A DNA stretch of 64,000 nt from Paragordius varius (lineage: Eukaryota; Animalia; Nematomorpha). The stretch covers positions 8,122,001-8,186,000 of the forward strand of contig OZ176054.1 of the NCBI GenBank assembly GCA_964247055.1, in the 5' to 3' direction. Both the position numbers and the translations under genes were made by a program. Under the pieces are notes generated by a model, which saw only the letters and a program-made list of their open reading frames with translations, was not told where the DNA came from and ran no database searches. Below are positions 47,101 through 49,966 of this stretch, piece after piece; position 1 is the first letter of the stretch; the number at the start of each line of letters is the position of its first letter.

Positions 47101-49966
47101 GACATATTTTTATTCAAAAGATAGAGTTTAAAAAGCTTTATTAAATGATATTAAGTTTATAATATAATAACATTTTATTATAAAGTTATATTTAATTTTC
47201 TCTCGATTTTCTCTTGTTTTTGAAAAATTGAAAAACCTATAATATTTCAAAATTCTGATTGGCGGGATCAAAATTTTTTTCACATTCCGTTTTAAAACAC
47301 TGAAATAAGTTATAATTTAAAAGTTTGAGTGGTGGTGCTCAAAAATGTCCAAATTTGTCGACTAGTGTAATTATTGCTATTATTGATTTTTTGTATTCAT
47401 TCTTCTTTAAAGGGCTCGTAGTACCGATAGTCTTTCGAAATGTAATCTAGTAAAAGTGACTTAAAGTGGAGCCCTGATCGTTTTTATGTTAAAGGACTCT
47501 GTTTATCCTACATCAGTATTAAAACAACTTTTTGAGTTTATATATAAATTCATTTTTAATTTGATTGCGAATAGTGCTTCGTGATAAAGTGATAAGGGAC
47601 GGAATAAATATTTTGTTTTAAATCGACAAGTGCATGATAGTTTTACATTAGATTTCAAATGCCCTCCTTTTTTGCCTTTTTGAAAAGCAAATTGGAATGT
47701 ATTAAGACAAATCTGTTGTTCTTTTCGCGATGACGTATTTTGTTTCTAATATTTTCATTCCGTGTAAAAATTTCAAAGGACGATATTTAGAGTATACTAA
47801 TCTATCTCCTTTTTAAGATTGTATTTTGGACAAATAGATGCGGCCATCGGCAAGGTTCTAAACATGCCAAAAGTTTGACATAAAAACAAGCCGACATCAA
47901 GGTTCTACCCTAACTTTAATCTTAATAGGTATATTGGATTATATTTCATCAGACATATCATTACCCCAAATACTCATTGTTGAAGATCTTGTCATTATAG
48001 CTACTTTCGAAAACGAATTAAGAAAAACATATTAAAATGGAATGCTTAAAAAAACATGCATCATAAATTCGGCAAATTAAAGAATGATAACGGGAGATAA
48101 ACCCCCGACGCCCAAACAACCCTACTCGGTCTGTCATGAAAAAGTTGAATTAAATCTTTTTTGCCACTCGTGCAATAAGGGGTAAACAAAAAACACAAAA
48201 ACATAAAGCTGGTCAATAATAATAATAATTTTAAATGTTTACCCTTCAAAAACCAAACCCATAATAAAAATAATATTTCTAGATTGAAAATATTAAGTAT
48301 GGAGTTTCTACCAGCTAGAGAGCATCTTTAAGAAATCTAAATACGAATCTCCATAAGAAATGGGTTGATAAAATTCAATCAATAAAAGTTTATACTCACA
48401 CAAAATCTATATCCTTAAAAAATAAACTTAAACTGTATAAATTTAGGATTCGCCATGTTTTAATCTCATATGCTTGTAAAAGTCTAAAACTTACAAAAAG
48501 AGCACAAACCCGACTCCAAAACACAGAAAATCGCATGCTATACTATATAATAATAATAATAATATCCCAGATTAAAAAGATACAATCACACCCTATTGTA
48601 AAAAAATGCGTCTTTAATAGTACGGCCACATCATGCGAATTAATAACGGAGCTTGGGCCAATATATAGGTTATTTGGACGGCCTAAATAGACGAGAACGC
48701 TGACAAGCTTGATTAAATCTTATCGGAGATTATCGTGAGGACATTCATGACAAAGAACAATACCGTGTTAAAATTCATGAATACTTCCAAGATCGGAAGA
48801 AAATAGGCTAATGTTGATTTTTTAGAACGAATCCCAAAAAATAATTTAAAAAAAGTGCCATCTTTTGAATCGTTTGTAACTCGACGAAAAAAATTGAACG
48901 AAAACAGCATATCCATGTTTAGTTAGGTGATAAATTCCAAATGTTTATTAAAACCTAGCGGGTATTAAATATTAACATGCGCAAATTTAATAATTATTAC
49001 ATAAAAATGTTATTGTTTGCCATTCATTATCTTCGCCGTATCAATATGAAAATGTTTAGTAAAAAATACATTTTAAGTTATTTTGATTAATATAAAATAA
49101 TAATATAAATTTTAAAATTCACAATACATTTGTATATGTGACATGTGCAAAAATTTAATTAGGCTATCAAAAAATGAATCATTTATATAACGAAAGTGTT
49201 ATAGTCAAAATTGTCAATTTTTGGACATTAAAGAATTTATTGTATTTTTCTTGAAATTACTTATTCCTTAAAGTTTGCTACAATTTGAGGGTGTATATTA
49301 GTCAAATATTTTGTATAATATATAACACAGAAATAAAAAACCCTTTATTAAATTTTTCGAATTTTACATAGAAAAATGTATTTTTGATAACTTTATCTCA
49401 TTAATAAGATAAGCAATTATTTAGACTCACATACTTTGGTTAATCCTGGTAAATCAACTAATGTCAGATTGAGGACATGTGGTGAAAAGACTTTTACTGT
49501 TATAGGCTCGTTGCTGATACCCTTATAATATAATAAAAAATGATACCTTATTGATTCCGGCTAATTTTTCCGTTTCTTTTTCAATTTCGGCTTTGACTTC
49601 TTCAAAATCTGTATAAACCTTATCCTTGGTGTGTAAAAATTTGACCCATTCAGTGACCTCCTTATTATTAAATCCTTAAAGTTAAAATTATTAATATACC
49701 ATTTAGATTTTTATGATCGATAGGATCATCCGTTACGTGTATTAATTGCAATATTATAGGCCTTCTGGTAACAATCCCGATTCCTCGAGGCAAAAAATCT
49801 TTGCCGACAATACCCTCAAGTACAGAACTTTTACCAGAACTCTAATTTTATAAACAATCTTAACTTGTGAGCCAACAACTACAATCTGTGGAAGCATAAT
49901 AAGATCGGAGCCAATTGTATTAAATACATCTTGAAGCTTATTTATCACAGGAATTAATGGTTCCAT
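32132..49966 (-). CDS. DNM1L: Dynamin-related protein 1 (mitochondrial/peroxisomal fission GTPase), multi-exon
   Basis: Spliced translation: [20 protein letters not shown]|[27 protein letters not shown]|[62 protein letters not shown]|[40 protein letters not shown]|[18 protein letters not shown]. Confidence 0.95.
32270..32801. mobile_element. piggyBac-like MITE in the last DRP1 intron
   Basis: ttta|cactccatgacctttt ... aaaaggtcaagaagtg|ttaa inverted termini with a TTAA-like target. Confidence 0.7.
33947..34225. mobile_element. hAT-like MITE
   Basis: Inverted termini cagcagtgtccaac / gttggataccactg and an internal gc(a/g)gcccgc motif. The 8-bp target duplication is only approximate. Confidence 0.6.
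34384..34514. repeat. Near-perfect 51-bp inverted repeat (hairpin / miniature element)
   Basis: 34384-34434 versus the reverse complement of 34464-34514 shows two mismatches around a ~29-nt loop. Confidence 0.85.
36549..40681 (+). CDS. Orphan low-complexity (K/N/S-rich) protein, predicted two exons (36549-38469, 39777-40681; ~941 aa), nested antisense in DRP1 intron 33314-41136
   Basis: A 645-codon ORF and a ~300-codon ORF in very AT-rich DNA. The GT donor at 38470 and AG acceptor at 39775-39776 are both phase 1 and join as ..ENILT-V-ENNCGQ.. No domain recognised. Confidence 0.6.
43950..44227. mobile_element. TA-flanked MITE in a DRP1 intron
   Basis: Inverted termini tataccatttacaatttaaattcaccc / gggtgaatttgaactataaacggtata, plus internal inverted sub-repeats. 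Confidence 0.7.

Follow-up and report, generated by a model that had tools for sequence, protein, structure and literature searches.

Ciliate introns of 15-30 nt are removed by the conventional U2-dependent spliceosome. Among animals, introns of less than 30 bp are known only in the Myxobolidae and in Dicyema, where the splicing signals are reduced to 'GTa...AG' with a few A residues preceding the AG (Hadjez et al., Mol Biol Evol 2026, PMC13644364), and the ultra-short introns of Dicyema japonicum have been described (Lu et al. 2019, PMC6736024). The parasitic flatworm Gyrodactylus salaris shows a short intron mode at ~32 bp, which is also found in tapeworms (Hahn et al. 2014, PMC4040987). A first-pass annotation of the DNA analysed here raised the question of whether micro-introns had already been reported for the lineage it comes from; nematomorphs are not among the published animal lineages with introns below 30 nt (PMC13644364), and no mention of introns was found in two hairworm genome preprints.

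The window, by which we mean the whole analysed stretch of 64,000 nucleotides of the hairworm Paragordius varius (contig OZ176054.1, positions 8,122,001 to 8,186,000), is AT-rich (GC 24-35%) and harbors a complete DRP1/DNM1L gene, the features of which are collected in Table 1. Exons 1 to 12 were delimited by eye from the junction sequences, the stretch ~43140-33330 lying outside the gene model, and homology and domain searches were run exon by exon. The Pfam Dynamin_N domain is recognised on exons 2 (48 bits), 4 and 5, and Dynamin_M on exons 6, 8, 10 and 11. The G1 (GSQ|SSGKSS), VTRRP, DLPG (G3) and TKLD (G4) motifs are all present, and G1 to G4 are intact only once three short segments near the 5′ end are removed. 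Exons 1 and 3 lie far closer to DRP1 chains than to dynamin-1 (exon 1: E 6e-13 versus 1e-5; exon 3: 1e-11 versus 3e-8), a comparison that is limited to these exons, as the stretch from exon 13 to the GED, where a PH domain would show, lies outside the model. The DRP1 of this genome is not fast-evolving. Searches with the exon-1 and exon-2 open reading frames match distant animals only, at ~65-80% identity, and retrieved no spliced or annotated protein of the same species that spans the joins, while the exon 11 search returned fragments only.

Table 1. Coordinates of the hairworm DRP1 gene and neighbouring features within the window
Feature	Coordinates	Strand	Description
DRP1/DNM1L gene	~32135..49966	-	complete gene
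Exon 1	49865..49966	-	102 nt; Met1-Gln34, first half of P-loop; human DRP1 1-34, E 6e-13
Micro-intron 1	49842..49864	-	23 nt; GT..AG, phase 0, GC 17%
Exon 2	49700..49841	-	142 nt; SSGKSS P-loop start, switch I, start of 80-loop; human DRP1 35-73, E 5e-14
Micro-intron 2	49675..49699	-	25 nt; GT..AG; GC 12%; phase 1, within a Gly codon (g|ga)
Exon 3	49547..49674	-	128 nt; human DRP1 83-123, E 1e-11
Micro-intron 3	49522..49546	-	25 nt; GT..AG, phase 0, GC 12%
Exon 4	49435..49521	-	87 nt; ends DLPGLTK (G3 motif); human DRP1 124-152; Pfam Dynamin_N
Intron 4	46137..49434	-	3,298 nt; GT..AG, phase 0
Dispersed repeat	46231..47373		~1.14 kb; inside DRP1 intron 4
Exons 5-12	43330..46136	-	exon 5 begins at 46136 with VPVGDQP; junctions read by eye; Pfam Dynamin_N and Dynamin_M matches on individual exons
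Gene remainder	32135..43254	-	exon 13, variable region, GED exons; traced by local tblastn with two long relatives (P0124, P0131) as far as the terminal exon, 32188-32135
GED exons	~33328, 33169-33038, 32933-32832, 32188-32135	-	Pfam GED, 51 and 28 bits on two 3′ exons
PDCD10/CCM3	59105..59941	+	one uninterrupted, intron-less ORF

All twelve modelled introns have GT-AG termini and consistent phases. The first three are 23-25 nt in length and the other nine range from 75 to 3,298 nt, with introns 5 to 12 measuring 432, 105, 85, 116, 156, 556, 373 and 75 nt. The first-pass annotation had singled out the three short segments and the long intron that follows them, and its coordinates and quoted sequences proved to be exact.

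Retention of any one of the three segments shifts the reading frame and leaves the P-loop broken. An unspliced reading meets stop codons after each of them and, as they sum to 73 nt, keeping all three also fails to restore the frame, so that the frameshifts claimed at first reading for this easily aligned protein are borne out. With the segments removed, the joins at junctions 1 and 3 align without gaps to human DRP1 (34|35 and 123|124), no residue being gained or lost, and GC content drops from 33-38% in the flanking exons to 12-17% in the segments. For each single length from 18 to 60 nt, ~215 bare GT..AG pairs are present on the two strands of the window, and as such the motif alone is worthless as evidence. 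What goes beyond chance at the level of the sequence is the precise location of GT and AG, at the very bases needed for DRP1 joins without gaps, for which we estimate from base composition a chance of ~0.0025 per junction and ~1e-8 for three.

A further GT..AG segment, 21 nt in length (43309-43329), is found at the start of the 75-nt intron 12, and its removal also keeps the frame. Were this AG used, the protein would gain 18 hydrophobic residues, in frame and free of stops, that other DRP1 proteins do not show. The segment is probably due to chance, an alternative 3′ site being possible, and it likewise illustrates that a tiny GT..AG segment is no proof by itself.

The positions of the three segments were compared with those of introns in other animals at four loci read at base level, namely L005, L006/L007 (one sample, two contigs), L008 and L009. 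At positions 1 and 3, all four have introns that agree with those of the hairworm gene in codon and phase, at lengths of 40 nt to 3.8 kb, position 3 being Lys|Gly in L005, L007, L008 and L009. In L005, introns 1 to 3 measure 158, ~110 and 81 nt and one extra intron is present, while those of L006/L007 measure 3.8 kb (3,794 nt, L006), 5.4 kb and 1.5 kb (1,537 nt, L007). The corresponding introns of L009 are 68, ~85 and ~50 nt long; this locus has position 4 in common with the hairworm gene (56 nt), and its introns 5 to 7 are also at positions of hairworm DRP1 introns. A phase-1 intron within the 80-loop at position 2 can be observed at the DNA level in L005 and L009 and, for L006/L007, by means of the read-through fragment P0004 encoded there, as L006 itself reveals only that exons 2 and 3 are separated by 5.4 kb. 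Introns 1 and 3 of L008 are 40 and 75 nt long, while intron 2 is absent and the position 4 intron has been lost.

The last of these loci (Logan SRR33454306 contig, 1749-2964) is a compact gene that mixes intron loss with intron shortening: positions 1 and 5 carry introns of 40 nt, positions 3 and 7 carry introns of 75-77 nt, and positions 2, 4 and 6 carry none.

Fragments retrieved with the first two exons extend the comparison to a wider range of animals. Those matching exon 2 typically open with residues that bear no relation to DRP1, the last of them a Q (CAG) just in front of SSGKSS, and past the loop glycine they read on into 'GK', as is characteristic of a phase-1 G|GTAAG donor. All of the 120 exon-1 fragments listed lose their likeness to DRP1 after G-x-Q and continue with valine (GTx). 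The length filter of this search excludes intron-less genes, and the count therefore shows that position 1 is widespread rather than universal. Eleven of the 120, with vertebrate DRP1 sequence and including one from the gecko Sphaerodactylus townsendi, break at Gln34, as read from the fragments rather than from their contigs. The mammalian alternative exon 3 (A-insert) is situated inside the 80-loop, at residues 69-89, and the first residue of mammalian DNM1L exons 3 and 4 varies with the upstream exon (PMC13669652; PMC6051998), which indicates a split codon at that junction. The phase-1 micro-intron at residue 82 is consistent with the mammalian exon-3 junction to within the 80-loop. The correspondence with vertebrate DNM1L junctions that the first-pass annotation had proposed thus holds for position 1, on the basis of the eleven fragments, and goes as far as consistency for position 2. 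Its suggestion that ancestral introns have shrunk, rather than new ones been gained, is supported by the shared codon and phase of positions 1 and 3 in the four loci, where the introns span 40 to 3,800 nt, and the three micro-introns can as such be regarded as old introns of animals that have become shorter.

When the 110.6-Mb assembly was searched in full and in all six frames with DRP1 exons 2 and 6, this locus and one other (C5:11.906-11.908 Mb) were identified. The latter is a classical-dynamin paralogue (L002/L004; G000:C5:11904805-11909687, minus strand) and, as it is the sole other match, the gene described here is the only DRP1 gene of the assembly. The paralogue has no intron in the P-loop or at the Lys|Gly junction (DRP1 positions 1 and 3), and its first introns are of ordinary length (~105 and ~80 nt), showing that micro-introns are not a property of the 5′ end of every gene in this genome. 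The first-pass annotation had pointed out that a second intact DRP1 locus would mark the present one as a pseudogene, and no such locus exists in the assembly. A decaying pseudogene with three small insertions at its 5′ end would share with this gene the feature that every segment breaks the frame when read through. All three supposed insertions, however, have GT..AG termini, fall at ancestral intron positions and are in the right phase; there is no frame break beyond the three segments in the twelve exons and the GED exons, and there is no second DRP1 gene to do the job. We consider a pseudogene very unlikely. The canonical termini, exact joins, split P-loop, intact gene, single locus and drop in GC content together argue, as the first-pass annotation had proposed, for real and obligatory micro-introns, and we conclude from these sequence features that the segments are very probably genuine 23-25-nt spliceosomal introns at ancestral positions in a single-copy DRP1 gene.

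The segments could also be removed or bypassed by non-spliceosomal means, such as somatic DNA elimination or translational bypass, or could have arisen as an artefact of assembly. GT-AG termini and conserved positions are predicted by spliceosomal introns but not by these alternatives. Furthermore, 70-77% of the words sampled from a 5.6-kb stretch are present in two sequencing runs from 2024 and, while these runs may be the source data, their content indicates that the DNA is not a one-off artefact. Explanations of this kind thus appear extremely improbable. Five runs of unrecorded kind share sampled words of the 5.6-kb stretch, at shares of 0.28-0.77, while five runs marked 'RNA?' hold next to none. 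Runs X3, X4 and X5 hold 28-35% of the sampled words of this stretch, ~21% of which is exon, and X3 carries a different organism label; these three could represent RNA, low-coverage DNA or a close relative.

The 5′ splice sites of the micro-introns are weak (GTTAAG, GTATAT and GTATCA), and their 3′ sites read TAG, AAG and AAG in micro-introns 1, 2 and 3, respectively. By eye, a TTAAC is found 7 nt before the 3′ end of micro-intron 2, while micro-introns 1 and 3 contain no convincing polypyrimidine tract or branch site, but A/T-rich runs only. Weak splice sites would be in keeping with real introns that are spliced inefficiently or conditionally, such that retention and nonsense-mediated decay tune the output of DRP1. 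Very short introns of Microsporidia are reported to be spliced at a median efficiency of ~25%, as cited in PMC13644364. Were each of three consecutive introns spliced inefficiently, however, an essential gene present in single copy would give little product, and regulation of this type seems distinctly unlikely here. On the preferred interpretation, the three segments would be ancient U2-type (GT-AG) introns of the single-copy DRP1 gene, shrunk to 23-25 nt, and their removal from the pre-mRNA would join both halves of the P-loop and the GTPase segments that follow. The ordinary spliceosome, acting in intron-definition mode, may suffice for this, with recognition depending on the AG, on an A-rich or branch-like run of bases 6-12 nt ahead of it, which in micro-intron 2 would be TTAAC, and on a 5′ site reduced to GTW. 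A length of 21-28 nt would be near the steric minimum between 5′ site and branch point. In a given gene, only the first few introns would presumably belong to the class, with later introns staying long and gathering transposons.

The repeat within the 3.3-kb intron 4 has at least 40 other copies, which share 92-96% identity and occur on all large contigs, from among 497 first-look candidates. It contains no notable open reading frame, no terminal inverted repeats are obvious at its approximate ends, and no gene or family-matching open reading frame was found in the intron. The repeat is a young, abundant and probably non-autonomous element, and the identity of its copies indicates that at least a third of intron 4 is a recent insertion. 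Beyond the DRP1 gene, and oriented away from it at a distance of ~9 kb, lies PDCD10. Its best match is the protein of Gordionus sp. m RMFG-2023 (55% identity; 270 bits), followed by those of arthropods (134 bits). A myxozoan or dicyemid origin of this DNA can be rejected on the grounds of this wide margin and of a DRP1 that is not fast-evolving. An identity of only 55% to Gordionus suggests that the two hairworm lineages are deeply diverged. The Gordionus assembly has a GC content of 26.9%, similar to that of the window, and a BUSCO completeness of 71.6%.

As DRP1 is essential, single-copy and easily aligned, a P-loop interrupted by a 23-nt intron constitutes, at sequence level, a very clean test case for introns of animals that approach the smallest physically possible size. 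Should the class be real in Nematomorpha, extreme intron shortening would not need genome compaction, and the class would help to find out what determines the minimal length of an intron. Mis-modelling of 5′ exons may then depress both the gene sets of the phylum and their completeness scores. More tentatively, and as a possibility that we rate below even chances, horsehair worms may represent a third, independent animal lineage that splices 21-28-nt introns, unlike myxozoans and dicyemids only at the 5′ ends of genes in a bulky, transposon-rich genome, which would point to cap-proximal or first-exon-linked intron recognition. Under the same tentative reading, standard gene finders and BUSCO-type tools would mis-model such introns, and some of the 'rampant loss of universal metazoan genes' described for Nematomorpha would therefore be an artefact of annotation.

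The layout of the DRP1 introns can be compared with several known systems. Human and mouse DNM1L comprise 21 exons (PMC13669652). The hairworm gene shares with animal DNM1L the intron after Gln34 in the P-loop and the split-codon junction in the 80-loop, the site of the mammalian alternative exon 3, and the junctions after the equivalents of Lys123 and Lys152 are placed in the DRP1 genes of other animals as they are here. Only the sizes differ, the introns being kilobases or tens of bases long elsewhere and 23-25 nt here and, in contrast to mammals, micro-intron 2 is too small to accommodate any alternative exon. Flatworm intron sizes are bimodal, with the short mode concentrated in the first two introns of a gene and longer ones from the third onwards (PMC4040987), and DRP1 has the same layout; the flatworm short mode is, however, at ~32-36 bp and the phylum is unrelated. 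Tiny introns are uniform in ciliates, which are protists, whereas the present gene is that of an animal with mixed intron sizes. The closest likeness is to the introns of the myxobolids and Dicyema, which measure 22-27 bp, have GT..AG termini with an approximate 'GTa' 5′ signal and are A-rich before the AG, as is also the case in the DRP1 micro-introns. In both, the introns are found at conserved positions between conserved exons, and the organisms are parasites. The DRP1 micro-introns fit the published ultra-short class in their length (<30 nt) and in their reduced splice-site motifs (GTT, GTA and GTA). The myxobolid and Dicyema genomes are, however, compact and have a median intron length in this range, whereas in the hairworm DRP1 gene only the first three of at least twelve introns are that short, the remainder measuring 75-3,298 nt and one of them carrying a young repeat. 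A genome-wide dominance of short introns, with a median below 30 nt, is thus not reflected in this gene, where nine of the twelve introns are long, or in the 80-105-nt introns of the paralogue. Within these bounds, the DRP1 micro-introns are a further, very clean case of the known ultra-short kind of animal intron.
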